Below, piece after piece: positions 134 to 62,675 of a stretch of DNA of 64,000 nucleotides; position 1 is the first letter of the stretch; each line of letters begins with the position of its first letter. The notes under the pieces were generated by a model. It saw only the letters and a program-made list of their open reading frames with translations. It was not told where the DNA came from and made no database searches. The stretch is from Bispira polyomma (lineage: Eukaryota). The translations under genes and the position numbers were made by a program. The stretch lies in assembly GCA_965649765.1 (NCBI GenBank), contig OZ287755.1:52390001-52454000 (forward strand). Reading direction: 5' to 3'.

Positions 134-438
134 ATGGACTTTACTTGCGCAATTCTTAGTTTTCTAATTCTGAGGTTGGCTTTGGGACTTCAACCAGTTG
201 TTCAAAATAATTCAATGTGTCTGGAAAACATTTGTGTTTTTGACACTGTGAAGTTTCCAGACACTTTAGATTACTTGCTGACAGTTCCCAAAGAACCTGG
301 TACCACAAGGATGTTTTTGTCCATGAGTTCCAGTCCCAACCAGTATAGTGCTGTTGCTTACGAATACTTCGCATCTACCATGACCATGGCGTATAAGGCA
401 TTGTGTCAATTTGGAGGTATTAGAAACCAAACATTTGA
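134..438 (+). CDS. Variable first coding exon V1 of receptor guanylyl cyclase-like gene (signal peptide + ectodomain N-terminus)
   Basis: gccATGg start; hydrophobic MDFTCAILSFLILRLALG; motifs CLENICVFD, TTRMFLS, YEYFASTMTMAY shared with five paralogues; ends TTT GA|gtaagt (305 nt, phase 2), compatible with acceptor at 50638. Confidence 0.85.
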
Positions 439-950
439 GTAAGTATTTTGTTATAGTTGCTGTTGCATTTTCTGCATTTTTATGTCATAGCATAAAAGTT
501 ACTGTTTAAGAGGAACATGTTGCTTATATTTCACTAATTTAAAACTTTTACAGAAATTTATTGAATTTAATTTTTACTTTTGGCCAAAACGTTTTTAATT
601 GCATTTGTAACAAGTAAGTGTTGCGTATCAATAGATATTGGAAAATTTACAGATTATTTTAAATGCCACAACATATAGACCGCTTACCTGTTCAAATTTA
701 AATATCGAGATGCATATCTAAAATAATTTGCTGTACAGAAACAATTGCAAGCCTACTTAAATGCATCAAAGCTTCTAAAAACATTTTAAGCCCTTTGGAT
801 CATCCGCATGTCATTAAACAGCCACAAAAAACATAGATAATTGTTAAAGATAGGGATATATTTTGGAGGACAAGTGTTATATAGTAAAAGTAATAACAAG
901 GCAGCTGCAATCCACATCAGCCTAAAAGGCTTATATTAGTCAATATAAAT

Positions 951-1830
951 AATGATTATATCAAATATATAATCACATTTATATCGCCAAAGAAAGGCTA
1001 ACTTTGTATGTGAGGTTTTGTCCATCACTGATATTTACCAGGTGGGGTTGAAGTGTTGAAAAACCTGTGTGTGTGTGTAGCCAGTCCAAGCTTTGCTCTT
1101 ATAATACATGTAAGTTAGGATTCTAACCATATCAATGTCAATATGTGTATTCTGTTTCCCTTCTTTTTTCTGTGTGGGTGAGAGATACCTGGGGTATTTT
1201 GAGTTTGTGTCCCTCACCACATTTATGTAAATAAATAATGTATATATGTCACTTGTGTGATGTAATCAAATTTTAAAGATCTTGTATACTTAGTTTAATA
1301 TATACATTTTGTCAGTTGATTAAACTGGCCATTTCAATCGACATCTTGTGTTTTCATCTTAATTTATAAATATTTCTGAATATGGGCTGATACAAATCAT
1401 GATTATATTAAATATATAATCACATTTCTATTGCCAAAGGAAGGCTAACTTTGTATGTGAGGCTCAGTCCATCACTGATATTTACCAACTGGGGTTAAAG
1501 TGTTGAAAAACCTGTGTGTGCGTGTGCAGCCAGTCGAAGCTTTGCTCTTCACTGACACAGATATATATTATTATATTGTTCTTCCCTTTTATGAAATAAT
1601 ACTAGTGGAAAAAATAACCCACGTCCACCCCAGTCTCCACTCTCAAAACGGTATATTTCTGTATGACCATTTCTGTATCTTTTGTTTTGTAAATCATACT
1701 TTTTAGACTAATATTGGTGGGTTTGTGTCCTTTACAATTTTGTCAGTTGAATAAACTGCCCATTTCAAGCCACATCTTGTGTTTTCATCTTAGTTTATAA
1801 ATATTCCTGAATTTGGGCTGATACAAACAA
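951..1830 (+). repeat. Local ~450-bp tandem duplication in V1 intron
   Basis: 951-1100 ~ 1398-1549 and 1308-1397 ~ 1738-1828. Confidence 0.8.
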
Positions 1831-4199
1831 TGTTAAAACAGCTATTGATATTTGGCGCCACGACCATTATTTTTGATCCTTGTAGTCTTTTGAAAGAGGG
1901 GTATGCAGACATCAAACACAATAAAATCCAAATGTATGCAGAACCACATGGTGCCCTTAAAATGGTGTACTTAAAGTCCCACGACTAATGGGTTGTCACA
2001 CAAATGTTCAACTCTTTTCTATGGAGTTTAAAAGTTATGTATATATCTAACTATTTTCACCAACATAGTTTCTCTTGAATAATTATATAAATTACATTTA
2101 AATAAAAAGTGAAATTATTCTTTAATTGATTCAGCATTGCAACATTTACGAATAGTTTGATATGTGAAATTATGGAGGAAAAATTCTAACTTCTAAATAT
2201 TGAGTGTATCTTAAGTGGTGGGATATAGGGGCAAATAGTCTGGCAAATAAAAATTGGTTTTCATTATGATCATGTCCTTATTTCAAAACTTGGAAATCCT
2301 ATTCTCATAATGTTTGACATTATTATCTAGGAGTCAACATATACATTATGTATATTCAGGTAGGAGAATTTGTTGGCTTTTAAATTATAAACGCACTGCA
2401 CATTACGGAACACACATACAGCAGCATAGCTGTACTACAACCGTTGTTAATATTAAATAGTTACTACACTAAAAAGATATGTTTATATAATAACATTAAC
2501 ACAAATATACTTATGCCAACTGGTCATTATACTGTCAGCCTCTCGTCCCTAACATAATGGGCTTTAACGTTGTGATTTTTAAATCATAAACCTTTTTGTC
2601 TGTTGAACAAAGATGTCATTGATTATCTTTTTTGCTACTCGATTGTGGATGCCTTAAATTGAAAACCTGACTGATGGAAGTAGTTCACTTTAAATTTACA
2701 GTACATATTCCTTTTTTCGAAAATTTACCAAGGTGACGGCTCACTATGTGTTCATCCCACCACCTAGAAGTCTTTCAAGTGAGCCAGTCTCTTATCAGAG
2801 CCACGTTTGTCCTATTCTTATTCCAGAGCTTTCTTCCAGAATTTTGAGCTTGATTGGGCTTTTCCATTGTGCCAGATTTAATGGTGAAAGAAACCGGTGC
2901 GGAGGCACTGTAAACCAACGACCCACCGCAAGTATCTGACAACCTGTCCCACAAGATAAAACAAATGGGATTTAAATGGGAATTTAATCACTGGGCCACA
3001 GTCCGGTCCACTACAAGCCTCTTTAAGACGAATTGTCAATTAAAAATGGCTCAGTCTGTTTCCAGTCGTCATAGTGGCCTAAAAGAAGGGCAACATTAAC
3101 AACAACCAAAATAATCTAAGTATACATCTGAAGGACGGCATAGCTGCAAAGCTGTCGTCCTTCAGGTAGGATATTCTCTATTCCATTCTGAAGTGGTTGC
3201 CACAGTAAAGGCATATTAACTGGAATGGCCTGGTACTAGCACAAGATAGGCATGTGGCACATGAGTCTAGTGAATTGCACCAAATGCCTTAGGTAAATTG
3301 GCTGACCAGCTGCTTTAGATGTAAGAACATTGACAAAGGATTCCATATTGAATTGGGTGCCAGTGCCATTCCTTGCCATGCAGTGATGAGTTAATGTTAA
3401 GATAGTTGTGACAGCCACTAACCGAGACATTTGCCAGCATTACTGCAGATATATGTGACTATCATCTCCTGCTTCAGCAATACTTGACAATCGATTGGCA
3501 TATATTCCTCAAAAGAAAGCAAAGATTCAAATATGACCCCAAATTACTAGAACATGTAGTAGATAATTTTAGATGTTAAAATACATACTACTATATAATA
3601 TTTGACTGCTTTTTAAAGATTTCAGTATTTTTGAGTTGACTGAAATCAAAATTAACAAGCTCTACCAAACGACCATGAAAAATAGTAAATAACATCAACA
3701 GATAATGGTAATAGTTGATGCTGTGCTGTTGAAAACATATAATGTTCTACAAAATCATAAGCATTTTATAAATGTTAGGTGACAGATCGTACCGATACAA
3801 GTTCCAATTATCTTTACATATAGAAACGATTTTCTTTTTGTACAGTTACTTTGTTCATATGAGCCACTAACTTGTACATACTAATCCTGTTTGGTAATTA
3901 AAATGTGTTAGCATCACCGTGAGGATTCATGCCCCACAGGTAAAGATTTTAACTAATTAGTTTGCCCTTCCTTGACTGGCTTTGTGATGAGCAGCATGGA
4001 ACTCTATGTGTTATAAGAAGCTCAATAGATGGTGAGAAGCTAATGGGGTGATTTTCCATGATCCCCAGTCGGTTGTTCATACAGATGCCATCTTTGTCTC
4101 TACCTGTACATGTATTTATCAAAAGTGTCAAACTCCAAGCAATGTCAACAGCTGTCTGTGCTTTCTGGTGAGTACATTTATGGACTATTGTCAAAAGTT

Positions 4200-4420
4200 T
4201 AAACAAATATTCTGTAGCCATTGGAGTGTCTTTAGTGCCTGTGAACTACTGCTGTATTTGTCTAAGTTTAGAACAAGCTTTGCTGCTGCATTTTGCAATT
4301 TTTGCATGCGACTTATCTCTTTCTCATGCAAGACCGTGAAGATACCATAGCCATATCCAGATGGGATCAAACAAGGCTATACACTACTTGTTTGTATATA
4401 TCTATCAATATACTTGGTGG
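4200..4420 (-). mobile_element. L2/CR1-type LINE 3' ORF2 fragment
   Basis: Minus-strand translation RMQKLQNAAAKLVL...ALKTLQWL. Confidence 0.7.
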
Positions 4421-5155
4421 AAAATTGTGGTACTAATAAAACCTGGAGGTGCTTACACCATGGTATCGCCATTGCTGCATGAGTTGTTAGCTTAGCAAGG
4501 TTACGTATAACTGCAATGGGCATCAAAAATAAGTTTTATACCAGGAACGGGTGAATTCATTTCTATTATAAAATCTAGATGTTTTAGTTATTACTGTCTA
4601 TGGGCATAATTTTACCTTATAGTAAGTACCCAGTACATCATATACTCAATCATTTAAGGTTTGGACTGAACTTCAAAATTTATAAAACTTAAACTTAAAT
4701 CACAACCTCAGACTAATGTGACATTATGTCCCCACCTTAAACTCAAACTGGATGTACAGCATAGTAGTTTATAACATAGTAACTAATAATAGTTTTATTG
4801 CAATCTTTTTTACCTTGTTAAAACTTACCTTAAACATTTCAAATATCTTGTCCCTGGAACCAGAGGAACTGATATATATTATAGTAGTGAACATTAGGTG
4901 TTTGTCTAGTAGGGTTTTATAAGCAGTTGTATGCAGTTTGTTATACCAAGGCTTCATCATAGATAAATGAGTTTGATAAGGGTTTTGCAACACACATTTG
5001 ACTGGGACTTAATTTTGCCGTTGTCCAGTCAATTTGGGGGCTTAAAAATGGGGCCAAGCTAACTTAAATAATGAGTTCAGTGCACTGGGTTTTTACTTCT
5101 TTCACAGTATACACCATATAGTACAGTCTGTACATATGTATTCTTAGTATGACTC

Positions 5156-5411
5156 GGGGCCGCGGTGGCCTAGCAGTTAGAAAGTATTGCACTTCACAAT
5201 CACTGGTCTCTCACCTCTGGGCGGCGTGAGTTTGAATCCCGTCGATGCCTATGTGGGAAAGGTGGTAGTTCCTTACTGTGGGCCACTGGTTTCTCTGCAG
5301 AACCTTGACCGACTGTATACAGTGTTTCCTCCAGCGTTTCCGAAAACCCGTCCCAATATAACCTACTAAAAGGTACTAGAGTGGACGTTAAATATCCAAA
5401 TTCAAATTCAA
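5156..5411 (+). mobile_element. tRNA-derived SINE family A, full length
   Basis: A-box/B-box head, (aaattc)n tail, 16-bp TSD attcttagtatgactc (5140-5155 / 5412-5427). Confidence 0.9.
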
Positions 5412-6581
5412 ATTCTTAGTATGACTCCCAGTCGTCCTGAGAACTGTCCACATAATTTGACTAATTCTTATCTCACAGACAGATATCTCTAGCTGGTATA
5501 GTTAGTTATAAGATGGTGGGAAGCTTACCTTGTGAAAAAAACAAAATCTAAATAGATATATTTTTAAATAGAAATATGAAATGATTTGTGTTTCTTCATA
5601 AAGAAAGGCCACCTATAGACTTTGTGTGGTCTAATCTAATCATTTCCATAATGGTGTTTACTCTCCGTACTGGCTGATTCTAAGGAGCAACAACCGAAAT
5701 CAGTGTTCAGTAGTTGTGTTGTGTTGGACAGAAGATAAGGTTATGTTGTTAATACGATTTTTTGTGGTAAAATTTACATTCTGTAAAAGCCAAACTTAAC
5801 TGTCTCAGCTGGATTCAAACAAAAAATTATATTTTAGAAAAAGTCCCTTCATACCTGGTTTTTATAAAACATTCAATGGGTAGTGAAATCTCTTAAGGAA
5901 ATCCTAACTAGATCCTAACGCGATGGCAGTGAAGTAAATCTGGAGTAGTCAATATAAAAAGACCCCCTCAAAAAAAAAAAAAAAAATGGACTGAGCCCGT
6001 GTCATGTGTGTTGGTAGTTACAGAGAATTGACAGGGCATTTCTCAGTCCAACGGGTGTAAGTCATAAGTTAAAACATAGGATATAACTTGTTTGGAGCTT
6101 TATTTGTTAAAAGGATTAGTTAACATCAATAGTTAGCATGTTACACAACCACAACTTCAACTAATACTATTAGTCTACTAACAGCTATCAAGCAATGTCT
6201 GTCCCCTGACTCATTACTTTATTACTATGTTAATACTATCAACATTTAGTTAATATTTACAGTTCCTTTATAGCTGTGTAAGGCGTTACATAAAGGATGA
6301 TAACATTGACAACTTAAAATAAGATGCATCAGCATCAAGTTAAAACATATGCGACAGGTAGATAATTACACTGTATTAAGAAGCATCAGACTTGCTTCCT
6401 GTTGGCGGTTAATGAAATTATACAGTATTATAAAATGACAAGTGTCATTATCAACCTGTTTGTTACTATATCTGCTTACGTATCTGTTGGGTTTAACCCC
6501 TTAGGGTGTTACCGTGAACTAGTAATTACAGACATTAGGATATTTAAAAGATAAAAGTGAAGGTACCAAACCCCAAGCAAG

Positions 6582-7578: not shown

Positions 7579-7639
7579 TAGGAGCAGTATTTTGTTCAGT
7601 CTAACAGGCCCATTTATACTTAATCATGAAGAAGTTGAA

Positions 7640-8440
7640 CTAAATTTGAAAATTTGGATATAATAGTCTTTCATCAACTTTTTCCCATATACACTTTTTT
7701 AAATGTTCAACTTCAATCATATTCATTTGGTGGTAAAAGTGCCATCTGGATAAAATATCTGCGTTTTTGTTTAAAAATCCCTTAATATGCTTGACCTCAA
7801 GGTTAATGTTGAATGCAGCTGTATATAGCCAGGCTGGTCTTACACATGCCATTAGCCAAGGGTCCTTGACCTTACTATTTTGGAAAGCATGAACAACTGC
7901 ATAGTTGTCGCACCATATTAACACAGTTTGATTTTCCCATTTATTTGCCCATATTTTAAGAGCTACCAATATATTGGCTGCTTCTAAATGGACAATGGAA
8001 GTACAGTTTTTAATAGGTTGAGGTATATCACAGTTGTAAACCAAACCTTGGAAGTAACCCCCTACAATTTGTAATGAGGCATCTACAAAAACTTCCAATG
8101 GCTTAATATGAACCTTTTTAATAGCTACTGTTCCATTAAAACTTTCTAAAAATTCAATAAACCATGCAATATCTCTATAGAAAGTTTCAGGTAATTTAAT
8201 ATTTCCTCTAGCTGGAGAATTCCTTAATACTTGCAATATTCTATTAGTAAACATACGGGCTGGTTGCACACAGCGACGTATATACAATAATTTTCCTGTC
8301 AATTTTTGTAATTGATTACGTGTGGCTATAGTTTTAATTGCCCAATTTTGACATAACCGTTTAATTTGTATTAATTTGTCATTTGGATTGGTCAATGTAC
8401 CTTTGCGAGCATCAATATTGATACCTAAACAAGTAACCAT
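7640..8440 (-). pseudogene. RT thumb / RNase H of YR retrotransposon
   Basis: VFVDAS, IVHLEAANILVA, WCDN, HIKG..N..ADILSR motifs. Confidence 0.9.
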
Positions 8441-9277
8441 GTGACTGGGAGGTTACTCTTTTTTCTTATTCACTGGCAGTCCCAAATATTGCAAAATATC
8501 ATTCAATTTTCTGAAATGACTAAATGCTTGTTTCGGTTTACTGACGCCTACGTAATCGTCTAAATAGTTAATTTCCCATATGTTCTGTTGACGTCACAAG
8601 GTCTGTACACATTTGGCAAGCCGCTGCGCCCGTACAAAACCCGAACGGTAGCCCTATATCTATAAATATTTGCTCTTTCCATTTTAAACAAAGTACCTGG
8701 TAATCAAAGGGGTCTATACGTAAATTTCTGAACGCACGTTCTAAGTCCGTCTTATATAATAATGCTGTTGGTCCAATTTTCTGTATCTGTTGGACAACAT
8801 TGTCTATGGTAGGATAGGTTAAAGTAAAGGGATTCCATCATAATTATTTGCTGCTACACAGCTGTTAACGCTTTCTCCCAAGGGCCATGATAGGTCAACA
8901 ATGACCCTGACCCCCCCCCCCCCCCCCCCATCAGGCTTATCACGTGCCATCAAAGGGGAAAAGTGAGTTCTTTCAAAAGGGGAATTACCAAGAGGGCCTA
9001 TCATGGCCTGTTTTTGTGTTTCCACCTGAAAGTATTTGTCTACCCCTTCAGGGCTTCTTATAGCAGATTGATGGTGTTTAATGTCTATATTATGCTTAAA
9101 AATATCATAATCTATATTCATAGGAAACCCAAATTCGATATAATCTCCCAAAATTTTCAAGTCGTAGCTTTTTAATAACGTCCTCCAGGCATTAATGTGT
9201 AGTCCAGACGGAACTTGTATTCGAGCACCCTTATAGTTGGGGACCCCTTGTAATTTCACTCTACTGTGTATGTCCAT
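8441..9277 (-). pseudogene. Reverse transcriptase (frameshifted)
   Basis: HFSPLMARDKPD...RVIVDLSWP; LYKTDLERAFRNLRIDP near 8715-8765; NYLDDY near 8552-8569 on minus strand. Confidence 0.9.
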
Positions 9278-9303
9278 TAACCATTTACTAGTTGGTTCAA
9301 AGT

Positions 9304-11316
9304 TTATTTTGGTAAAATTTGATTGGGTAATTTACCGAGGAATTTTATGTGGTATAAAGCCAAATTCCCTTTCCCACTGCTTATGATTACAATAATTTGT
9401 ATTACTATTGTTATTGCCCTTATTATTGGAATTATCGCCCGTGTTATTTTGTAGTTACTTTCCTTAATGCTCCCACCACTAGCATAACTAAGACTTAATC
9501 TATTATATTTTATTTGTTTCTTTAACACGTGTGCATTATGCACATGACTGTCCATTATATTGTGTATGTGTACATTATCACCGTATTCATTACGTGTCTC
9601 ACATATGTGTACATTATGTCTTTCACACTCGTGATTTCCGTTTTCACGTGTATTGTGCATTTGTACGTTACTATCATTTTCACAGTATTCTAATAACGTG
9701 TGTACATTATGTTTTATATAGTTGTGTTCATTATAGCTACACATTTCACAATGAACGTCATTAGCATGTTGCATAAACTTATGTGCACTGTAATTTTGAC
9801 CATTTAATTTGCCATATCTATGTGCAATAACTTTATGGCCTTTAAGGTCATATTTATTAATTTCATGATATATAGGTTTTTGTGCATCTGTTTCTTTTTG
9901 GTTACACATTTTACCACTCATATTCTGCCTGTCGTTTTCTTCACCAGTCATTTGTAATGACATATCAAAATTTGTATAAGCCAATATTAAACTAGAATTG
10001 TTATTTCCAATCTGGTCCGAAATTTCATAAGTACTATATTCAATATTACTGTCTATAACAGAATAGAATATTTTCACTTTATTATTAGCCATTTGACAAT
10101 AAACATGAGTACTAAAACGTGTGTCATTAAAATCAACTTGCACGTAACTAAAATCATTGTTGTGAAGGAAGCTTACATGCTGACCACTTCCTGGAGATTC
10201 TAACGTCCCTGTCTCACATTTAACATGTTCAGTATCAAGACTGTGTGTATGTGAGTTATCTATATTAAACCAGTCACTTCCCAAGGTTTTATTATTGGTT
10301 GGCACTTTTAATAAGGTTTCATTGTTAGTATTGACCCTGCGACTAGACATACTGCAACTCTCAAGTGCCGAAGACTGTCTAGTCACTGATATAGGCATAA
10401 TTTCCGCAGAACTACTCACCTGGTCTTTTAGTGTGATATATTCATAAAAACATATGTTGGGGGTGTTAGTACTATTTTGGCCCAATGTGCTTTTACAACC
10501 ATTTTCTATAATATATCCATTGTTTTCAGAACAAGCGTAGGTATTATTAGTACTCTCAGGGCTGCACATGATAAACGACATGTGCCCTCTTGAGCTACCA
10601 ACCTTGACCTTGTTCATCACATTACAATTTTTTACTTTATATTTGTGCACATTATTTGCCACACGACTGTCTATATAGGTGTCACTTTGAACGCATTTTC
10701 TAGAACTGCACGTATTATTATTAACATGGCTTCTAAAACTGCTAGTTAAACTATTTACTTTAGTCGCTTTACTACTTGCACTATCATTAACATGTGCATT
10801 TCTCTGCTCACGATTTTCCTTTACATTTCGCCAAACATTACTTTTAATATTATTTTTACCACTCATGTTTGTACTGCCGTCATATATGACATTACTACTA
10901 AGGACATTCCTCGAACTACGTATATGTTCAGCACGTCTTCTGGGGCTATCCCTTTTAGTTGGCCTATTTCTGTCAATTCTGTGGTATTTATTTTTACTCA
11001 CAGAAGTAACTGCCAAAGGATTTAATTTCTGTCCGTTTACATCGTTTACTTTAGATATATGTTCAGTGTATATAACTAACTCCCTTTCAGTTGGCCTATT
11101 TCTATCAATTCTGTGGTATTTATTTTTACTCACAAAAGTAATTGCCAAAGGATTTAATTTCTGTCCATTTACACTGTTTGATTTAGATATATGTTCAGTG
11201 TATATAACTAACTCATATTCCTTATCAATAGGCCAGTTTGGACCACTCTTGTTAAAGACGTTGCTCTTTACCCCTGTGAGTATTATGGTCATTTTTAAAG
11301 CCACCACCATTAGCAT
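9304..11316 (-). CDS. 670-aa Asn/Ser/His-rich ORF, probable N-terminal extension of the element's pol
   Basis: Open 2-kb frame between gag and RT; contains a 132-bp internal duplication; function unknown. Confidence 0.6.
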   Translation of the reverse strand: MLMVVALKMTIILTGVKSNVFNKSGPNWPIDKEYELVIYTEHISKSNSVNGQKLNPLAITFVSKNKYHRIDRNRPTERELVIYTEHISKVNDVNGQKLNPLAVTSVSKNKYHRIDRNRPTKRDSPRRRAEHIRSSRNVLSSNVIYDGSTNMSGKNNIKSNVWRNVKENREQRNAHVNDSASSKATKVNSLTSSFRSHVNNNTCSSRKCVQSDTYIDSRVANNVHKYKVKNCNVMNKVKVGSSRGHMSFIMCSPESTNNTYACSENNGYIIENGCKSTLGQNSTNTPNICFYEYITLKDQVSSSAEIMPISVTRQSSALESCSMSSRRVNTNNETLLKVPTNNKTLGSDWFNIDNSHTHSLDTEHVKCETGTLESPGSGQHVSFLHNNDFSYVQVDFNDTRFSTHVYCQMANNKVKIFYSVIDSNIEYSTYEISDQIGNNNSSLILAYTNFDMSLQMTGEENDRQNMSGKMCNQKETDAQKPIYHEINKYDLKGHKVIAHRYGKLNGQNYSAHKFMQHANDVHCEMCSYNEHNYIKHNVHTLLEYCENDSNVQMHNTRENGNHECERHNVHICETRNEYGDNVHIHNIMDSHVHNAHVLKKQIKYNRLSLSYASGGSIKESNYKITRAIIPIIRAITIVIQIIVIISSGKGNLALYHIKFLGKLPNQILPK

Positions 11317-12396
11317 TTTTCTGCCTTAAACATTTTGTCAATGGATGTTCATATCTTTTATTGGTTTCTTTCAAGCAATAGGAACAGCAATGTTGGTAAT
11401 TTACCCCATTATGAACGTGATCACTGTCCTGCCGACAATGACTCCTATTATAATGAATACACGCTTGAATTCCCAAACTCGCAGAGGTGGTTTTTGCATT
11501 ATACAACATTCTTTGCGTATTTCTATTTTTCGTTTTCTCAATTAAATCCGGACGAGACCAATCAAGGTGGCCTTTCTCCATGTCTTGTAAAACTACGGCA
11601 TGTGCCCGTTTAGCGGTGGCCATGGATAATTCTATCGCATCTTGCATCAGAATAACACTATATTGTAACATTTTTTGTCTAACATTTTCATCTTTTTGCT
11701 CTAATATACAATATAGCATGCCTTGGACCCACTGCTCAGTTGTCATCTCGTCATAAGTCGGCTGTTTAGAGCCTGACGATACCGAGCAGTAGTCTTGTGG
11801 CCAGCTAATAGGGATCTTTACTTTTGCAACTCCAGCACAGAATCGACCAGATTTTAAAGATGGCACTTTACCTGAGTTCTCGACACGTGAAGCGTTGTCA
11901 TACTTTTGGATTCTCTGCTGAACTTCTGCTTGTATCTTTGAGTTACTTCGGAGCGCTTCAAAGGAAGGCAGTTTCGCTGGATTCGCTGTCTGTGGTTGCT
12001 CAACTCTCGACTTTCTAGCTACAGGGGATTTCGGTGAACTAGCAGCAGACGGCACAATAGAAAGTTCATTGATACTAGCCCTTTCTTCTTGACGTTTTAA
12101 ACGCTCATCCTGAGATTGTAATTGCCTACCCATATTTTTCACTATACACAACAATTCGTCCAGTTTTTTTTCGACACTACTACACTTTGTGTTTCATTCT
12201 GATCAATTTTTTCACAATCTTCCATTCCCCCATTTGCACCTTGTAAAGACACGTGTTCACGTGTTTCACTATTAACTTTACTACTGTCACTTTTTCCTTT
12301 GGCATTGCCCTTACTAACTTTGTCTTGTGCTTTCGGTCCCATTTCACAATGTTTTATAACTTTCTGACAGAATATATGCCAACTTGATTTTTCCAA
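11252..12396 (-). pseudogene. gag-like ORF1 with C-terminal Cys/His zinc finger (frameshift near 12150)
   Basis: CIHYNRSHC...HCCSYC...HPLTKC; two overlapping ORFs 12142-12396 and 11252-12154. Confidence 0.75.
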
Positions 12397-17328: not shown

Positions 17329-17578
17329 AGGCGACAATTTCTATGAAATCAGTATAGTGGTCCCATTAGTCAATCAAAGGTCATTGAGTGCCAGTAGTTG
17401 GTAGCTGATCCTGCTGTAAAAATCTTTCAACAGTCACACTCTCTGGCTAATTAGTGATGTTTTGTAATCAACTAGTCCAAGTCAACAGCATAGTGAGGAT
17501 ATTTCAAAACTGTCCTTTAGTGTGAAGAGACCTCATTCATTGCTGACTTGGCCATCAACCCACACACAGGGAGACACT
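17329..17578 (+). promoter_or_regulatory. Putative promoter/5'UTR module of V2 (paralogous copies at 1-133, ~22270-22520, ~28922-29174)
   Basis: Collinear block upstream of V1-V4; CAATCAAAGGTCA in V2-V4 and CTAATTAG in all four; function inferred from position only. Confidence 0.5.
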
Positions 17579-17886
17579 ATGGGCTTTACTCAGGCATTCC
17601 TGACTTCTCTAGTCATCAGCTCATCTTTGGGACTTCAATCTGTTGTCACACATAACACTTCAGTGTGTCTGGAAAACATTAGGATTTTTGACACTTTGGA
17701 GTTTCCAGAGACTTTAGACTATTTGCTGACGGTTCCCAAAGATCCGGGTACCATAAGGATGTTATTGTCTTTGACTTCAAATAAGCGATCCAGGGCTTCT
17801 ACTGCTTACGAATACTCCGGTTCTGCTATGACCATGGCATATAATGCATTGTGTCAACTTGGGGGTTTTGCAAACCAAACATTTGA
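17579..17886 (+). CDS. Variable first coding exon V2
   Basis: actATGg; MGFTQAFLTSLVISSSLG...CLENIRIFD...YEYSGSAMTMAY...NQTF GA|gtaagt; 308 nt, phase 2; no stops or frameshifts. Confidence 0.85.
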
Positions 17887-22520: not shown

Positions 22521-22828
22521 ATGGGCTTTACTTGGGCATTTCTGACTCATCTATTCATGAGCTTGGCTTTGGGACTTCAATCCATTGTCACACACAACAC
22601 TTCAGTGTGTCTAGAAAACATTCATGTTTTTGACACTTTGGAGTTCCCAGAGACTTCAGATTATTTGCTGACGGTTCCTAAAGATCCAGGTACCATAAGG
22701 ATCTTGTTGTCTATGAGGTCCAATAAGAAGAGCAGGAGTCCTTCATCATATGAATACTCTGGTTCTACCATGACCATGGCATATAATGCATTTTGTCAAC
22801 TGGGAGGATTTGGAAACCAAACATTTGA
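22521..22828 (+). CDS. Variable first coding exon V3
   Basis: actATGg; MGFTWAFLTHLFMSLALG...YEYSGSTMTMAY...NQTF GA|gtaagt; 308 nt, phase 2 (an in-frame upstream ATG exists at 22479). Confidence 0.85.
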
Positions 22829-24599
22829 GTAAGTATTTCGTTGGGGTTGTTGCTTTTTCTTAATTTTTATATTGCAATAAATAGTTACTGTATCGCTGGG
22901 TAATTAAGCTCGAATGGAATAAATATAAAGTTAATAGGATTGAAACATATGATCTCAATGTTAGATACTCAATGTAGGTTATAAATACAGGTATTTTCCT
23001 TCACACAATATCATCTTAAGTTTGTAAAAATTGATTCAAAGTCTCATATAAACTCATACTCAAATAACCTGTATTAATGGATTGAATTGCATTAAATAGC
23101 ACCTAAAACAATGTTTTCGGTACATAAGGGGCATCAAAGAATGACTTGCACTAGTTGATTTGTTTATATATGCTGGAGATTTAAAGTTCTCCAAAATAAG
23201 TTGTGTCCAATTTATTATGTCAGCTGAGATTACTAACTGACTTCTAGTTGTAGACATACGTCTCAGTAATGCTTGGAGTTGTCTTGAAGTTACTTTTGGC
23301 AATAGATTTTAATATTGACCATTTGCCCATGAAAGTAAATGTTTATGTACTTGTGTAAACTATTATGTGCCCAATAACATTTTGTATTCTTTGTATTCCA
23401 TAAGCCTGCTTTATCGTGTACGTTTTATATGCTTCAATTATCTTAAACTTTGAGATACCTTTTAATGTAAAGATGAAGGTTGCTGAATTTTGATGTCAAT
23501 GAAAGTCATTTTTTATAAACTCAATTAGTTTTATGCACAATGTCATGCATTTATTGGGAAATTAGGCAGGAAGGGATTATTGTAAAAAGGAGCAGTAATA
23601 CCTAGTCAAAACGTCATTTAGCCAGTAATGTTTTCACATGCGGATTAAAAAATGTATGAAAAGCATAGAGCTATATTTAAACTCTTGTTTAAGCTGCAAT
23701 GCCTCATTTCTTCATAAAAAACTTAATATATAAGGCTTTTACTTTTATTGTATCAACCTTCTTCTTCCTCAGTATTTCTTGTTTCTGGTTAATGACATGT
23801 GGGGTACTTGTACACACATTTGTCCTTTAAATACCTAGCTTCAGCAATGACTATGGCCTGTAGTGAACTGTGTAAGTCAAAGACATTTGAAAACCAAGAG
23901 TTTGAAGTAAGTTCACCAATATAACCTCTTAAATGTGGTCCTTGTCTTTTGGATGTTACTATTTTGAAAGTAAAAATGATAAAAAATAATTTTTACAGCT
24001 TCGAGCATTCTCTGAGGGAACAGACCATGGATTTGCTAAGATATCCAGTAAAAATGATCTTAGACTAAAAAGTTTCACCTCAAAACTTATATTCCTATAA
24101 GCTTTTTCTATCATACAGTAGATAGCTTTCCACGTCGTATTCATTTACTGAAATAACAATCATTAAACTTATGAAATAATGGTCCATTATTTAGGAAATA
24201 TATACCTTTACTGACCAAATCAGTGACTACACCTTTTTTACTGAAAGTTTTAGTAAATATATGTACATGACAAAAATGGGGAATAAATACATTAGTAATG
24301 ACAAAGATGTAGTTTCTAAAATATGAGCTGAAGAATTTGAAAACCTGTACAATAGTAATGAAGGTAGTGCCAAGGTAACGGAATTCAATAAAGGCATTAC
24401 AGATCAAGTAAATGTCCTTGAATCAAACTTGTCTTTTAATTCTCCTAGTGATTTAAACAAGACTACAAAGAGAAATACAAAAAGCCTTAGGTAAAGTAAA
24501 AACGGCAGAAAAATCTCCCTTAAGAAGTGTTTAAAAATAAAATTCAATTGCTCACAGAACTTTTTTTATTTGTAATTCTGGTTGTGTTATTCCCTGAAA

Positions 24600-45710: not shown

Positions 45711-46066
45711 ATGACGATAAAATTCAAGCCTCACTGGGCAAGAAGGCTGGTATTGCAGTGCTTTGTAGAAATGTTGGTTCTACAAGTACAGTACACTTGC
45801 TGCTTTCAAGCAATGGAGGGATGTACTACCAAGCTCACTCTGTGGGATCTTGACAAATATCCAAAGGAATTGGGATTTATTCCACATCTGGATCACCCTA
45901 GATCACTACGGATTTTCTACTCATCCAACAACTTTCCGGATGACTTTGTATTGGAGCCAATCCTGCTCAGGAGAAACAAAAGATCGTACGAGTTCCAGGC
46001 TGCAGCTCTCACCATGGCCTTCAATGACCTCTGTAGGTCACAGAGACTTGATGTAGTAGAAATACA
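45711..46066 (+). CDS. Divergent variable first coding exon V5
   Basis: CTTKLTLWDLDKYP, SLRIFYS, YEFQAAALTMAF align with the V1-V4/V6 motifs; ends ATA CA|gtaagt (356 nt, phase 2); signal peptide less typical. Confidence 0.8.
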
Positions 46067-46725
46067 GTAAGTAGCTACTCCAGTGTAGGAATGTAAATAA
46101 TTAACACATGTCGTGTATTGTCACAAATATATAGTACCTATCTACTCCAGTATAATATAGGAATCTAAATAAAAAAGATGTGGTTTGCAGTGTCACAAAC
46201 AGATAGTACATAGCTACTCCTGTGTAATATAGGGATATAAATAGTAAAGATGGGACTTGTATTGTTACAAATAGATAGTAGTTAGGTACTTTAGTATAAT
46301 ATAGGAATATGAATAGTAAAGATGGGGCTTGTATTGTCACAAATAGATAGTACATAGCTACTCCAGCATAATATAGGAATATAAATAAGAAAGATATAGT
46401 CAGCAGTGTCACAAATAGATAGTACATAGCTACTCTAGTATAATATAGGAATATGAATAGTAAAGATGGGGCTTGTATTGTTACAAAAAGATAGTACTTA
46501 GCTACTCCAGTATAATATAGAAATATAAATAGTAAAGTGTGGCTTGTATTGTCACAAATAGAAAGTACGTAGCTACTAATGTATAATATAGGAATACAAA
46601 TAGTAAAGATGTGGCTCGTATTGTCACAAATAGAAAGTATACCGGTACTCAAGTATAATACAGGACTATAAATAGTAAATAAGTGGATCATATTCTCACA
46701 AATACAGTTGTACCTATCATCTAAG
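46060..46725 (+). repeat. 72-bp minisatellite (~9 copies) starting at the V5 donor
   Basis: gctactcc-like motif recurs at 46141, 46213, 46285, 46357, 46429, 46501... Confidence 0.92.
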
Positions 46726-50056: not shown

Positions 50057-50385
50057 ATGCTCAGAAATCCAGTTCCTTCCTGCACCATGTGGTGTATGTT
50101 TACAACTATGCTGTATTTCCTAACCATGCCCTCGTGTTATTATTGCAAAGAGATGTGTTTTGATAATTTCTGTGTTTGGGATCTCTTCAAACACCCGGAA
50201 ATGTACGAGGAACTACTTACACGAGGAAGGAACCACACCACTCTCCGGATACACTACTCAGTGTCTAGTAATACACAGCAAGTCACCCTCACGGCGTATG
50301 AATACCAGGCTGCAGCACTCACCATGGCACTACATGACTTTGACTTGTCACAGAATGCGACAACAGGAAGTGACGTAAAGATAGA
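50057..50385 (+). CDS. Proximal variable first coding exon V6
   Basis: accATG; hydrophobic MWCMFTTMLYFLTM; CFDNFCVWDLFKHP, TLRIHYS, YEYQAAALTMAL; ends ATA GA|gttagt (329 nt, phase 2), 252 nt before exon C1. Confidence 0.85.
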
Positions 50386-50637: not shown

Positions 50638-50744
50638 ACTGATCTACATGAATGATCAGTGCAGACCAACTACTGCCATTTCTAACTTTCTTCAGCTGCA
50701 GAAGTTAGGCTTGGATGCAGTGTTTGGGATTCCTTGCTCACAGG
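50638..50744 (+). CDS. Constant exon C1 (ectodomain: LIYMNDQCRPTTAISNFLQLQKLGLDAVFGIPCSQ)
   Basis: tttctgttgtttcag| acceptor, G|gtaagt donor; D-x-C and AVFGIPCS match the D..C / 'vdaiiGPgCs' motifs of ANF-receptor domains; phase 2 in, phase 1 out. Confidence 0.92.
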
Positions 50745-52094: not shown

Positions 52095-52577
52095 AGTGTC
52101 CCTTTGATCTTATATATTTATTTATACATCTGGGTTACCTATTACATCACTACAATGTCCCTTTGATCTATTGTATCATACACACCACTGGGTTACCTAT
52201 TACATCACTACAATGTCCCTTTAATCTCTTGTATTTATTTCAAGTCACCATACATACCCCTAGGTTACCTATTACGTCACTACAATGTCCCTTAATCTGT
52301 TGTATGTATTTCCAGTCACCATACATCTGGGTTACCTATTACGTCACTACAATGTCCCTTTGATCTGTTATTTGTATCTATTTCCAGTCACCATACACCT
52401 AGGTTACCTATTACGTCACTACAATGTGCCTTTGATCCATTGTATGTATTTCCAGTCACCATACATCTGGGTTACCTATTACGTCACAACAATTTCCCTT
52501 TGATCTGTTATTTGTATCTATTTCAGTCACCATCCATCTGGGTTACCTATTACGTCACTACAATGTCCCTTTGATCT
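52095..52577 (+). repeat. ~70-bp tandem repeat (~7 copies) made of the C2 acceptor plus first ~50 nt of exon C2
   Basis: Unit tgtatgtatttccag|tcaccatacatctgggttacctattacgtcactacaatgtccctttgatc; last copy is the real exon start. Confidence 0.93.
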
Positions 52578-52678
52578 CCTATGCCTCCAATGATGCTGAC
52601 ATTTCTGACAAAGACACTTACAATACTGTGGTACGAGCGGGAAACGGTTACAAACAGATTGGGAAGGCCTTTGTGGAA
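52527..52678 (+). CDS. Constant exon C2 (VTIHLGYLLRHYNVPLISYASNDADISDKDTYNTVVRAGNGYKQIGKAFVE)
   Basis: tttcag| acceptor, GAA|gtaagt donor; NVPLISY...SDK..Y.T..R motif typical of rGC/NPR ectodomains; phases fit (1 to 0). Confidence 0.9.
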
Positions 52679-53969: not shown

Positions 53970-54066
53970 ATATTTAAAGCTTTCAAGTGGCAGACAGTAT
54001 CTATACTAGCTAGAGATGCGGGATTGTGTTACTATGGGGTGGATTACATCAAAGATGCTTTTAAAG
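53970..54066 (+). CDS. Constant exon C3 (IFKAFKWQTVSILARDAGLCYYGVDYIKDAFK)
   Basis: aag| acceptor, G|gtgaac donor; F-x-W-x-x-V motif; phases fit (0 to 1). Confidence 0.85.
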
Positions 54067-54949: not shown

Positions 54950-55048
54950 ACAATGGCTTGTTTGTGGCTGAGTTCAATGTTGTGGGACAAACGGTCACAG
55001 ATGATGAATTACTGAGGTATCTGATGAACTTCAGAGACAGAGCCAGAG
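54950..55048 (+). CDS. Constant exon C4 (DNGLFVAEFNVVGQTVTDDELLRYLMNFRDRAR)
   Basis: ttttaccag| acceptor, G|gtatct donor; ends in the conserved 'aR(vii)' motif; phases fit (1 to 1). Confidence 0.87.
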
Positions 55049-55738: not shown

Positions 55739-55941
55739 TCCTCATCGTGTGCCACAGTAACAGTCTCATCATGCGCCTCCTGGAGCTTGCCCAGGAGCAG
55801 GGTATGGTGACTGCTGAGTTTGCCTACTTCACCTTCAGCCTGATGCCTGGGGATTATACCCTGGAACCGTGGGGCAGCACAGAGGGGCTGAATGAAGAGG
55901 AGATACAGCACAGGAGGGACCTCTATCAACACCTCAAAATA
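55739..55941 (+). CDS. Constant exon C5 (VLIVCHSNSLIMRLLELAQEQGMVTAEFAYF...YQHLKI)
   Basis: tcttgtag| acceptor, ATA|gtgggt donor; 'A...GM...eyvF' motif of NPR/rGC; phases fit (1 to 0). Confidence 0.9.
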
Positions 55942-56089: not shown

Positions 56090-56152
56090 ACCTCAAAATA
56101 GTAGGTGCTTACCTCAAAATAGTAGGTGCTTACCTCAAAATAGTAGGTGCTT
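56090..56152 (+). repeat. 3 x 21-bp perfect repeat copying the C5 exon end and donor
   Basis: acctcaaaatagtaggtgctt x3 vs exon end acctcaaaata|gtgggtgctt. Confidence 0.9.
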
Positions 56153-56605: not shown

Positions 56606-56719
56606 GCTACTCCAGCCAATATGACAGGACCAGACAAAGATGCCTTCATGCAGGAAGTCTCTGATAGGATGGCAGAGCATCCGTGGTATGTGAATACCAG
56701 CAAGGAGCTTGGTGTCCCT
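56606..56719 (+). CDS. Constant exon C6 (ATPANMTGPDKDAFMQEVSDRMAEHPWYVNTSKELGVP)
   Basis: tttccag| acceptor, CCT|gtaagt donor; 114 nt, phase 0-0; F..eV..r....Pf-like motif. Confidence 0.88.
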
Positions 56720-57085: not shown

Positions 57086-57208
57086 TAGGAATAACCCATT
57101 CCAAAGCATGGTATACAGTAATTTTTATCACTCTTCGCCTTTGTGTTACTTGGCCTCCAATCGTGATAAAAATTACCGTATACCATGCATTGTCATTGGT
57201 TATTCCTA
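57086..57208. mobile_element. Palindromic non-autonomous element
   Basis: taggaataacc...gcatggtatacagtaatttttatcac / gtgataaaaattaccgtataccatgc...ggttattccta. Confidence 0.7.
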
Positions 57209-57469
57209 AAATCATCAGCAAGGAGTTTGGTGTTCCTATTAAGTATTCACATTAAAATTCTTTGTTTTGTGAGCTTTGTATAAACATGTATCATTAGCTG
57301 GTTAATATGTGGGACACAAGTTGATTGGCTAAAACCTGTGGTCTCCCATGGCCATGTGGTTGGGAGGTTGGTTTGGTGATCAGTAGGTCCCAGGTTTGAC
57401 TCGCACTGGTGCCATAATGATTACCGCACCAGGCCTCAGTTTGTCCCCTCATGTATATATAATATATAT

Positions 57470-57750
57470 ATGTGACCACCCTAGTCTCTAGTAGTTAGTG
57501 AGTTGGTCTGGTGATCAAAAGGTCTCGGGTTTGACTCCCGGTGCCTGTCGCTAGTTTTATTTGGCGAGATAACATCCTTGGGCAAGATGTAAACTTAGTG
57601 GCTCGGATGATCACTTAAAAATGATGGTCCTCTGTTATTGAGTTCTATCTCCAGTGGTAGGGCGAAGATCCTTAATGACATATTTAAATGGTCATCGTCA
57701 AGCCTCGGCACCCATAGTGATTGCTCATAAGGAAGCACTTTTGAAATGAT
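57470..57750 (+). mobile_element. tRNA-derived SINE family C (inverted copy at ~62220-62450)
   Basis: gataacatccttgggcaagatgt and ttctatctccagtgg shared in opposite orientation with 62320-62420. Confidence 0.7.
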
Positions 57751-57808
57751 CATATGTCATATAAGTGCACTGTAACATAAATATCCTATATTCTATATAT
57801 TCCATTAG

Positions 57809-57944
57809 GGCTCTCCGTACAGTTTGTACCTTTATGACTGCATGTGGCTCTACCTACTGGCTGTCAACGAGTCTCTTAATGAGGGCCTGGATCCCAGGAA
57901 TGGAACCCTTATCTTTGATAAAGCCAGGAACAGGATCTTTGAGG
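57809..57944 (+). CDS. Constant exon C7 (GSPYSLYLYDCMWLYLLAVNESLNEGLDPRNGTLIFDKARNRIFE)
   Basis: ttag| acceptor, G|gtaact donor; LYD..LY..A.Ne and NG..I....N..FeG motifs. Confidence 0.92.
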
Positions 57945-58826
57945 GTAACTGAAGTGGTTGTAAAGTTAGAGTCACATGCAGAATATACTAAATATTAACA
58001 AAATGTTAATTATTTTTTGTTGGTCTTTAAAAAACAATAGTTATATGTCATCAAACTTTGGACAATCTGAGTAATATATATTACACATCAATACTTAACT
58101 GTTTATAAGACACATTTGTCAACATGTTATTATTAAACAGTTTATGTGTGTTGTATAGTATGGTATCCTGATCACTTAGGGATCAAATCCTTAACACACA
58201 CAACTGGCTTCTGATGATCAATGCTTTGTCATAAAACTGTTTCTATTTTTTAGAACACCAGGGGCAGTATATACTAAAGTTCTTATACTTAAAATAAGAA
58301 GCATTGTTATACTTAGAATAAGAAGCATTCTTATATTTAGAAAATTTTGAATTTTAAAAATTGTGAATAGAAACCTAATTTAGGTAAGGTTTTTCTTAGA
58401 ATAAAAGCTCAGTCTTAGTAAATACCAAAAATTTTTATTCCAAGTATAAGAACTTTAGCGAATGTGTTGGTCATCAGTTTGGCACTATATATAAACTGTT
58501 TATTAATGGGCGTTACAAAATATTATTTTCTCACAGTGACATCACAGACATAACACGTCATCTTAGTGAGCATAATAACCTCTATTATCCAAAACATGAA
58601 GGAAGAGCCACATTTTGTTTGTATAATAAAAATGTTCATAAAATAGAACAGGTATTTAAGTATAAAACTATAAATTTAGGAAAGTGGAAATATTTTCATA
58701 AAATCTAATAATCAGACTATGGAAGTTCCGATAATAGAAGTTCTGTTGTATTTTTTAATATTTGGGGTCCATCCCTTGTAGCTAACGTCCAATCTAACTT
58801 TAAATCCCTTGTATTTTTATATCCAG

Positions 58827-58957
58827 GCGTCTCTGGAGAAGTAATCATGGATAACGTTGCAGACCGGATCCCGAACTACTGGCTGTGGCAGATCCAGCCC
58901 GGAGACAAGCAGTTCTCTTACTTTGCTACACTGAGAATGATTTCAGAGGAAGGGAAA
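58827..58957 (+). CDS. Constant exon C8 (GVSGEVIMDNVADRIPNYWLWQIQPGDKQFSYFATLRMISEEGK)
   Basis: atccag| acceptor, AAA|gtaagc donor; G.sG.V.mD..gDR motif. Confidence 0.92.
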
Positions 58958-59689
58958 GTAAGCAGCATATATATATCTCTCTCTCTCTATATATATAGAC
59001 TACTTCTGGTATATGTGAACAGATTGAGGGTGTGTGTGTGTGTGTGATCAATGTTTTGTAAAGCAATGCTCTACAGGGGATAAAACCCAGTAACAGCAGG
59101 AACAATCCACATGACCATCAGCCCGAGTTAAACAAGTATTCAGTTGGGCCACCCATTTATTCGTGGTTGTTGGATCAGCAGACTGGTTACATTTCAGAAC
59201 TTTTGTAACTTAAATTCCAATATCTAGTTTTAAAAAATACTTGACCCAGAAAGGTCAACATGTTACATGTATATTAAACTTTGATTAATTTAATAATAAT
59301 ATTTCATCACATAATTGACCCCGGATGGTCAGAACCTATCACGTTTATGTCTGACCAGTAAGTTTTGAGAGTTGCAAGTCCTGCAGTTTGCCAACTATTT
59401 TATATTAGTGTCATACACTGGAGGGGATAAGACCCAATGACTATTTTTATGTGGTCTTCTAAGCAACTATGCATCTGCCTGCACCTAGGAGCCCTAGTCT
59501 CTAGATCAAACTAAACTAAACCACAGTAATTAAATATACATATACCTGTACATACATCCATAAATGTCTGCAATTCAACCCAATAGCTAGTGAATCTTAA
59601 ACATTTAGATATCAATTTAGCACATATACCGTCTCCTAATATATCCAGAGTGTGTTCAATCCATGTATCTCTATTTTTATTGATTTTAT

Positions 59690-59970
59690 GGTGGTCTCTG
59701 TGGCCTAGCAGTTACAGTGTCAGACTTTGGATCAGAATGATTTAAGGCTCTCAGTTCAGTCCTCGATGCTGGCCGAGTGATCGTACCCTTGGAGAAGGTA
59801 TTTCACACAAAGTTGCCCCTCCTCTGCCCAGGTATATAAATGGGTACCTGGCCTTTAATGGGTGTTAGTCTTTGTGCACCGCATGCAACAGCATGGCTAG
59901 TATTCTTCCTAAGGAAGCTGAGACTGAACAACCCAGCCTGAGTGATGTAAACTGTAAAGTCGGCTTAGAC
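59690..59970 (+). mobile_element. tRNA-derived SINE family B (inverted copy at ~31020-31230)
   Basis: tRNA-like head, central caggt(a/g)tataaatgggtac motif; reverse-complement copy at 31020-31230. Confidence 0.7.
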
Positions 59971-60037
59971 CTCAACAAAGGTGAATTATTAGACTATAAA
60001 GCTACCCACATTTACACACATTTACATTTTTGTTTAG

Positions 60038-60146
60038 AGAGTCTACTTTTCCAAAGAGCCTTACTGGGGTACAGAAGACGGACAACCTCCACCTAATGAA
60101 CCAGTGTGTGGTTACAGACACGAACTCTGTCCTCCCAGCACTAAAG
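60038..60146 (+). CDS. Constant exon C9 (RVYFSKEPYWGTEDGQPPPNEPVCGYRHELCPPSTK)
   Basis: tttag| acceptor, G|gtatat donor; W...PP.xPxCG....C extracellular juxtamembrane motif of receptor guanylyl cyclases. Confidence 0.92.
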
Positions 60147-60580
60147 GTATATGGAATGATTAGGTCACAAGTTTAATGGCAGGATATTAAGCCTTTCAAC
60201 CAATATGTTGTTGGCAAGCAATGAACAGCATTTGTTACTCCCAGAAGTAGTCGACACATCAAAAATATTGTTTTATTTTCCTCTTCAGTTCCTCTTAATA
60301 GGAAATTGTTAGTACAGCAGACTTCTTTGTTTAAAAAAATCTAATGTGAGGTCGTTATTGAATGCAGTAAGTAGTCTGTGGTCTGTCTTTTTAGTGACTC
60401 CAGCTATCTATAACCTATTACCTAAACAATTTCCTTCAGTTTCCCGCAATAGTTCTCTCTTGTGGTAAAAATCGGTTGGAGCATCCTTCAAGTGGATGGG
60501 CAGAATGTGAACAACGAGGCTTGCTTGTAAAATAGGTGTATCTATGGGTAGAAATCAAATTGCTACTTAATTAGAAGCCA

Positions 60581-60771
60581 CAGTAGAACCTTTATTATCC
60601 GACCTTCTATTATCCAAATATTCCATTTTACGAGCTCAATTTCACTCTACCAAACTTATTTTTTGCTATTGTTTATTACTAAATGCCACTTATATTCTAA
60701 GGACCTTCAATTATCCAAACAAATTGTCACTCTCCCAAGATGTCTGTAAAATAGAAATAGAGATTTTACTG
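60581..60771. mobile_element. pogo/Tigger-like MITE
   Basis: CAGTAGAACC...TTTTACTG termini; near-identical to 62000-62183. Confidence 0.75.
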
Positions 60772-61345
60772 TACTTATTTTGCAATTAGATATTTTCTGT
60801 TTTACTTTTTTTTACAATTAATGACTTGGTGTAGTGTAAGGGTGAAAATATCTAATCCTTCATCAAAAACCAATAAAAAGGTGCTTTGCATGCAGAAATA
60901 ATTAGAGATATTTGCCAGGCATTGTACACACAAGTGCAACACATCGAGGTCATACCTCATTTGTTGGCATTTTACCTGAAAATGATGATCTTGACCTGAA
61001 AAATAATTCAGTAACCACTCTTCACAGAAACTTCACATATTTTGCAAACATTTTTATTAGAGGCTATACACATGTGCAGCATCCTGCTGTGATCTAGTTT
61101 GACCTATGACATTGCAGCAATGACACTTAACCAAAGCCTATATATGTCAGTAACTACAAAACTTGTCTAAAATTTCATGCAGATACAAGTTAGGGAATAT
61201 ATAGATATTTGTTCCCTTCACTGATTGAATGTTCAAGTATTTCACCCCAAAGGGCGAGGAGTTTTAACACTATCTCTAATACTCTTTTACTTAACCTTAA
61301 AAACATTCCACTCAATTACTTTTCACATATCTTTTGTCTCCTCAG

Positions 61346-61427
61346 GCAGAGATGCGGCACTAATCGGTGGCTTCTGTGGTGCAGCTGTTCTAATTATTGT
61401 CGCCTTTACTGTCTTCATCATTTACAG
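61346..61427 (+). CDS. Constant exon C10, transmembrane helix (GRDAALIGGFCGAAVLIIVAFTVFIIY)
   Basis: ctcctcag| acceptor, AG|gtaagt donor; ~23-residue hydrophobic stretch followed by basic residues in the next exon. Confidence 0.92.
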
Positions 61428-61999
61428 GTAAGTGCTGAGTCTTTCTTGGCTTTCTGTTTGTTTTTACAACTTTGCTATGTATATTCCTGCAGGTACAAGT
61501 GTTGGTGAATCCATGCGACCCTACAAGAGCACTCAGGAGAGTACATACCTCTGCCAAGTCACACGAGTGCTACAAATTTAACACTTTCGAGACCTATGTT
61601 GTTGGCAAGCAGCAAACGACAATTGTTACTCGCAGAATCTATTGTCTGTCCAAAAGCAATCAACAACCCAAAAATATTATTTACTTTTTTTCCTTCAGTT
61701 CCTCGCAGTAGGATAATATTGGTTACACCAGACTTCCCCTGTTTAAAAAAAAAATTATATGTAAGGTACTTATTTAATGCTGAAAGTAGTTTTGGGTGTA
61801 TGTGTTAGTGAATTCAGCTATCTGTAACCTTTTGCCGAAATATTTCGTTACAGAGTCACTAATGATACAAAAGCTAATTTTCTGCTGTTATTACAGTCAA
61901 AACTCTATTATCTGAACATTTAGAGAGAGCAATATTTTGTTTGAATAGTAGAAGGTTCATAAATAGAAGAGGTTCTTTAGTATAAAAGGTACTTTGGTA

Positions 62000-62183
62000 C
62001 AGTAGAGCCTCTATTATCCAAACTTCAATTATCCAAATATTTGATTTTACGAACTCAATTTAACTCTCCCAAACTTATTTTTTGCTATTTTTTATACTAA
62101 ATGCCACTTCTATTTTACAGACTTTCCATTATCCAAACAAATTGTCAATCTCCCAACATGTCCGTAAAATAGAGGTTTTACTG
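62000..62183. mobile_element. pogo/Tigger-like MITE with TA TSD
   Basis: ta|CAGTAGAGCCTCTATT...AATAGAGGTTTTACTG|ta; partial relatives at ~61894-61980 and ~58575-58750. Confidence 0.8.
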
Positions 62184-62581
62184 TATAAACAAATAGGATG
62201 ATGTAAATTCAGGAGAGTGAGCGTGTGGTCCTAAAATTGAATATGCGCTTCCCCATCTGCAGCCACTACAAAGGCTTGAGGATGACCATTTATCAACGTC
62301 CCCTGACGATCTTTAGCCTGCCACTGGAGATAGAATAGTGCCAGAGGACTGCCATTTTAAGTGGTCATCTAAACCACAAGGCAAACGAGTGTTCACATCT
62401 TGCCCAAGGATGTTATCCCACTAATCCGGTGCTGGTAATCGAACCTGAGTTTATAGGGGAAAATATTTGGTTAATAGAAGTTTCGATTATAAAGATAATA
62501 ACATTTCTCCATTTTGAAGAATGACTGTGCTCATTTCATTGGTTTTGCTGTTTCAATTGGCTGATATAACCATCTTTTTAG

Positions 62582-62675
62582 GCGTAAGAAGTTTGAAGAA
62601 GATCTGCAGAAAATGACTTGGAAGATTCCGTTTGAAGAGATAGAATTCAGTGTCAAGAAAGGTGCAGGTAGTTCG
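62582..62675 (+). CDS. Constant exon C11, cytoplasmic juxtamembrane (RRKKFEEDLQKMTWKIPFEEIEFSVKKGAGSS); gene continues beyond window
   Basis: tttttag| acceptor, TCG|gtaagt donor; resembles the NPR-A/B 'ExELxxMxWxIxxEEl' segment preceding the kinase-homology domain. Confidence 0.9.

Follow-up and report, generated by a model that had tools for sequence, protein, structure and literature searches.

The stretch analysed here (the window: 64,000 nucleotides of Bispira polyomma, GenBank assembly GCA_965649765.1, contig OZ287755.1, forward-strand positions 52,390,001 to 52,454,000; C8:52.39-52.45 Mb of a 1.04-Gb genome) holds, together with its flanks, a conserved variable/constant array in one receptor guanylyl cyclase (rGC) gene: at least eight coding exons (V exons), paralogous to one another and lined up in tandem, which very probably serve as alternative first exons. 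In our reading, promoter choice and splicing of one V exon to the first constant exon (C1) would give a family of receptors on a single cyclic GMP (cGMP) module, with exon 1 undergoing birth and death; we put the probability of this reading at roughly 0.8. A variable-first-exon/constant arrangement had been proposed in an earlier note on this DNA, and it is supported by the single constant set, the common phase of the V exons, a second species, purifying selection and the lack of upstream acceptors.

In the proposed mechanism each V exon would have its own promoter, transcription would start at one of them, and the cap-proximal donor of the chosen V would be spliced to the single C1 acceptor, downstream V exons being skipped for want of acceptors. 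What follows the V-encoded piece, from the bulk of the ectodomain through the transmembrane helix to the kinase-homology domain and cyclase, would be common to all products; they would differ in signal peptide, Cys-containing N-terminal extension, strand 1, the next loop and the first helix of the Venus-flytrap lobe. The array itself would expand and contract through duplication and loss of exon 1 together with its promoter.

The array and its single receptor body

V1 to V6 each open with an ATG followed by a hydrophobic leader and end in a GT donor in phase 2 (GTAAGT in five, GTTAGT in V6), and V exons are 101 to 132 codons long. A profile built from V1-V6 brought to light two more V exons, U1 and U2, both intact and both lying outside the window on its upstream side, each with ATG, leader, conserved Cys and helix, and phase-2 donor. 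Across the 131 kb scanned, 8 of 13 plus-strand frames combining an ATG with a terminal donor were V exons, all in phase 2, and no V exon was found beyond U2 as far as -80 kb. Genome-wide, V-like exons occurred only in the array and once each at paralogues at C8:7.62 and C8:67.06 Mb. Features are listed by window position, with negative positions lying upstream of the window.

-15308..-14962, +, U2: intact V exon, 15.3 kb upstream of the window (profile search)
-10596..-10199, +, U1: intact V exon, 10.6 kb upstream of the window (profile search)
134..438, +, V1: variable first exon, 101 codons plus 2 nt
17579..17886, +, V2: variable first exon
22521..22828, +, V3: variable first exon
23796..23906, +, broken V relic: the 3'-terminal third of the exon, preceded by stops; donor in phase 0, which does not match C1
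29175..29482, +, V4: variable first exon
45711..46066, +, V5: variable first exon, divergent (23-30% identical to other V exons)
50057..50385, +, V6: proximal variable first exon, with a 1:1 orthologue in the second species
50638..50744, +, C1: first constant exon; ANF_receptor ~27-60; Cys pair and GxPC motif
52527..52678, +, C2: ANF_receptor positions 66-111
53970..54066, +, C3: ectodomain
54950..55048, +, C4: ectodomain
55739..55941, +, C5: ectodomain
56606..56719, +, C6: ectodomain
57809..57944, +, C7: ectodomain
58827..58957, +, exon C8: ectodomain
60038..60146, +, C9: juxtamembrane region, two Cys
61346..61427, +, C10: transmembrane helix (assigned from a hydrophobic run in the sequence)
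62582..62675, +, C11: start of the cytoplasmic part
window-equivalent ~70.6-83.6 kb, downstream of the window: kinase-homology, hinge and cyclase exons

C1-C11 were defined from the sequence, and each V was joined to them by script to check the frame. C1 opens with a single base that completes the split codon of V, and the joined products were stop-free (V1 to V6: 543, 544, 544, 544, 560 and 551 amino acids, respectively). Genome-wide searches returned one C1 and one C2 at the array locus, and local tblastn between -80 kb and C1 returned no copy of a constant, kinase-homology or cyclase exon. What the earlier note had read within the window (six intact V exons, a single exon 2 at 50638 with its completing base, an uninterrupted frame for any V with the 11 constant exons, and no copies of downstream exons between V exons) holds up on each point, and its suspicion of more V exons upstream of V1 is borne out by U1 and U2; its figure of at least six variants was correct for the intact exons it saw, but too low as a count. 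A separate gene for each V with its own downstream exons is ruled out, as no constant, kinase or cyclase exon lies within the array.

The body of the gene was assigned from domain matches. PF01094 (ANF_receptor) was matched by C2 (E = 4 × 10−5), with C1 and C5 matching weakly and in order; PF07714 matched three kinase-homology exons (E = 5 × 10−7 to 6 × 10−4), and PF00211 matched three exons, with the guanylyl-specific motifs ETIGD and PRYCLFG present. A few small cytoplasmic exons were not located. These matches identify the gene as a receptor guanylyl cyclase whose cytoplasmic module is present once. It might be argued that each distal V exon is a gene in its own right, coding for a small secreted protein of ~80-100 residues, as a read-through stop lies 1-3 codons past each donor and AATAAA occurs within 600 nt after V2, V3 and V5. 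However, the stop is automatic from a phase-2 GTAA donor, 5 of 8 V exons have no nearby AATAAA, full donors are preserved in both species, and V is a domain fragment whose homologue in paralogues is a spliced exon 1, making this explanation very improbable.

Three tandem repeats adjoin exons of the gene. One (46060-46704) starts exactly at the V5 donor. A second (52097-52577) consists of the C2 acceptor and first C2 codons, with five exact acceptor-start copies between 52243 and 52525; it is absent from ~130 nt upstream of the second-species C2 and is probably a recent intronic repeat. The third (window-equivalent 76600-78600) follows immediately on the hinge exon and repeats the 3' end of that exon with its donor ~40 times; these donor copies are possible alternative donors, or may be neutral.

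Promoters or splice cassettes

If each V exon is a first exon, promoter-like sequence rather than an acceptor would be expected before it. A short motif lies at similar distances before four of the exons:

5..12, +, CTAATTAG motif: 129 nt before the V1 ATG; candidate homeodomain-type promoter element, putative function

The same motif occurs at 17447, 22385 and 29036, before V2-V4, so that it lies 129-139 nt before V1-V4; it also lies 166 nt before the second-species exon Va, and there are seven occurrences in 71 kb. Over the ~200 nt that precede V1-V4 the copies agree at 70-87%, this DNA having been duplicated together with the exons, and a TATA-like box lies 57-114 nt upstream of three second-species V exons. 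In UGT1A, promoters were duplicated along with the exons (PMC1885805), and the likeness upstream of V1-V4 together with CTAATTAG fits such a history, although it is not proof of it. To score acceptors, a model was built from 11 true acceptors (median score 4.0) and applied to the upstream 250 nt; the best scores upstream of 13 V exons ranged from -0.1 to 2.8, compared with a random-window median of 1.9. The lack of a strong upstream acceptor and the motif common to V1-V4 favour a separate promoter for each V.

These data also bear on whether the V exons are mutually exclusive internal cassettes, lying behind a shared non-coding leader and chosen by splicing as in insect Dscam1. Weak AG sites upstream of some V exons and a short block ~600 nt upstream of U2 that is conserved between species would suit cassettes. 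Against this, no V has a strong acceptor, the scores being level with or lower than those of random windows, each V has its own ATG and signal peptide, and the duplicated units keep promoter-like motifs at a fixed distance; we regard cassettes as improbable.

A second species and selection on the V exons

When 1.8 billion proteins were searched with a profile, four V-like products turned up on a single contig of 1.63 Mb from a second, distant species (ENA ERZ22147071, ctg31237l), which was examined over 690.7-779.1 kb; the comparison covers two species. The contig has 36% GC and orthologous exons, and is invertebrate-like, not human. It carries U2a (ending at 705509), U2b, U1, Va, Vb, V6 (ending at 769103), C1 (771271), C2, C3 and C4 in that order, with six intact V exons on one strand (plus), all donors in phase 2, and a single C1 that likewise starts with one completing base. 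Comparison with an orthologous locus, which the earlier note had called for, yields a V array before one C1 with the order of V types identical in both species. The possibility that the array is an assembly artefact is negligible: the 214 kb examined are free of gaps, the V copies diverge by 10-25% or far more at the DNA level, and the same layout stands on an independent 1.6-Mb contig of another species, which rules out mis-assembly.

In a tree of V exons the U2-U2 and U1-U1 orthologue pairs were strongly supported and the V6-V6 pair weakly. The V1-V4 type has four copies in B. polyomma and two in the second species, whereas the U2 type has one and two, respectively. No V5 orthologue was seen in the second species, and V5 was matched best by an isolated exon (37%) from a marine biofilm scaffold of 1 kb. 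Cross-species identity was 42-64% for V exons and 74-88% for constant exons; the V6 pair was 67% identical. The copy-number differences in the V1-V4 and U2 types, the relic at 23.8 kb and the better conservation of constant exons point to birth-and-death evolution with lineage-specific duplicates. At the C8:7.62-Mb paralogue, one V-like exon was found in the 25 kb examined, in the same phase and followed by C1 and C2; this paralogue uses one homologous exon 1, in the same phase, in both species. This shows the V type to be an ordinary first coding exon, and a single exon 1 is probably the ancestral state.

Between the two species, the mature parts of orthologous V exons differed at a proportion of 0.53-0.69 of synonymous sites (pS) and 0.23-0.37 of non-synonymous sites (pN), every type being significant (P = 0.026 to 1 × 10−9). 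Constant exons showed synonymous differences of 0.50-0.77 and non-synonymous differences of 0.06-0.16, and are more constrained than V. Synonymous sites are near saturation between the species. By these proportions, orthologous V pairs are evidently under purifying selection, which, together with the conserved layout and the lineage-specific duplications, excludes simple decay of the array. Within the genome, the ratio of non-synonymous to synonymous rates (dN/dS) was 0.36-0.38 for V2-V3 and V2-V4 (P < 0.003). Amino-acid changes cluster in the signal peptide and in a loop at residues 63-74, which varies in length among V exons from ~12 to >30 residues. In this loop V3 and V4 differ at 6.5 of 29 non-synonymous and 0.5 of 7 synonymous sites, which is too few to claim positive selection.

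A further alternative is that only one or a few V exons (e.g., V6) are in use, the remainder being partial duplicates that have fallen silent or are in decay. In its favour, a broken relic already exists and significant constraint is lacking in the young pairs V3-V4 and V1-V2. Yet eight and six intact frames with intact donors persist in two species near synonymous saturation, pN is well below pS in every orthologous type, and the order of types has been kept. Because of this selection signal, transcription of V6 only is unlikely, and we consider restricted use in general to be a poor explanation of the array, slightly more so than cassettes.

Related sequences were also noted elsewhere. Five rGC genes on the same chromosome, paralogues that share the C1/C2 exon structure, lie at C8 7.62, 10.80, 10.89, 10.93 and 67.07 Mb. 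A C1-like exon at C6:42711626-42711727 has a score identical to that at C8:10804428 and no nearby C2 match, and is possibly a displaced partial copy. Long intron-free frames (450-725 amino acids) with cyclase domains lie at C1:22.40-22.44, C2:87.97, C4:7.97, 85.14 and 97.51, and C8:52.12 Mb, the last 270 kb upstream of the window. Lone V-like exons were present on short contigs from four other samples, and the two with DNA end in phase-2 donors, so the V exon type extends more widely. A word-index protein search with V returned second-species exons only, and scans of JGI metagenomes gave nothing useful; matches to ankyrin and other repeats in the protein search were rejected as spurious.

The swapped segment and comparable systems

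An AlphaFold model of V1 (predicted local distance difference test score [pLDDT] 76) comprises a signal helix, a strand, a short helix, a strand, a loop and a long helix; fold searches with it were uninformative (best Z = 3.8). C1 aligns weakly with positions 47-79 of leucine/isoleucine/valine-binding protein and 30-60 of ANF_receptor. By offset from C1, V would supply the signal peptide and the Cys-containing N-terminal extension and, within the membrane-distal lobe of the Venus flytrap, strand 1, the loop after it, the first helix and the beginning of strand 2. Of an ectodomain of ~430 residues, V exchanges ~70-100 mature residues at the start, so that isoforms would differ in one corner of the domain. 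The earlier note's suggestion of different ectodomain N-termini is accurate in that V replaces the start, but the replacement goes no further than those residues; V as the whole ectodomain was rejected, given its 101-132 codons.

In bacterial binding proteins and metabotropic glutamate receptors the ligand cleft is lined by the loop before the first helix. Natriuretic peptides, in contrast, sit between subunits when bound, and the residues involved would be constant in this receptor. Set against each other, these make ligand tuning plausible at about even odds: the variable loop may alter ligand or partner recognition, or else the array would mainly diversify expression and trafficking. The Cys pair and GxPC motif of C1, which are constant across isoforms, match by position the Cys60-Cys86 chloride site of GC-A, near the dimer surface (PMC4049422, PMC5225109). 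Heterodimers between isoforms are possible, since rGC heterodimers occur in C. elegans (PMC5225109). A protocadherin-like extension, in which single cells would pick among at least eight promoters, V would swap a cleft-rim loop and helix, and a constant dimer surface would pair isoforms into up to 36 dimers differing in ligand tuning, is rather unlikely.

Several points weigh against the array reading and the placement of V. Searches of Pfam, PDB and Atlas with V gave no match, and its place in the fold rests on weak matches of the neighbouring exon (E = 0.13-0.4). The acceptor model was trained on only 11 sites. For V3-V4 and V1-V2, dN/dS was 0.73 and 0.80, not significantly different from 1, and pairwise selection is no proof of present-day use of every copy. 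It is also worth noting that V-to-C1 splicing, promoter choice, cell-type-specific use and ligand effects are inferred from the genome sequence.

Among known systems, the vertebrate UGT1A, GCNT2 and UGT2A clusters (PMC1885805) resemble the array in their tandem, same-phase paralogous first exons, a signal sequence in the variable exon, one constant set, relics, lineage-specific duplications and a common upstream motif. In UGT1A-type clusters, however, the variable exon encodes the whole substrate-binding domain, whereas V encodes the first elements of one lobe, in a different protein family and an invertebrate host. Clustered protocadherins alpha and gamma (PMC1885805, PMC7811963) likewise place variable first exons of cell-surface isoforms on a common cytoplasmic part; their variable exon spans the entire ectodomain and transmembrane helix, while the rGC ectodomain is largely constant and the product is an enzyme that makes cGMP. 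The locus is not itself a clustered protocadherin, as V has 101-132 codons and the ectodomain is of the ANF_receptor type; it would work like such a cluster without being a member. Chelicerate sDscam (PMC9258826, 10.1101/2019.12.15.877159) is also from invertebrates and uses alternative promoters to swap the N-terminal ectodomain part only, but exchanges whole immunoglobulin domains for self-avoidance instead of a sub-domain Venus-flytrap piece.

The receptor body is that of GC-A/NPR1 and C. elegans GCY proteins (ectodomain, transmembrane helix, kinase-homology domain, hinge and cyclase), whose ectodomains sense peptides or ions (PMC5225109, PMC1435932). Known rGC diversification has proceeded by whole-gene duplication, with 27 genes in C. 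elegans (PMC5225109, PMC1435932), whereas exon 1 alone appears to be multiplied at the B. polyomma locus, and no report of an exon-1 array in an rGC was found in the open-access literature. The layout is of a known kind; what is new is the protein family, the sub-domain scale of the exchanged piece and, probably, the phylum. The locus would add an independent origin of the variable/constant layout. Eight receptors alike but for ~80 residues would form a natural swap series, in which the part of the ectodomain that sets the ligand specificity of an orphan rGC becomes testable. V exons are probably missed by gene annotation.

Mobile elements lie in and around the array. Retroelement-like open reading frames with an RNase H-like match, DIRS/Ngaro-like by eye, occupy 7643-12193 (minus strand) in the V1-V2 intron, and a relative sits elsewhere within the second-species array region. 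Upstream of the array, window-equivalent -80000..-62500 contains a ~5.6-kb Gypsy-like element arranged head to tail in at least three copies.

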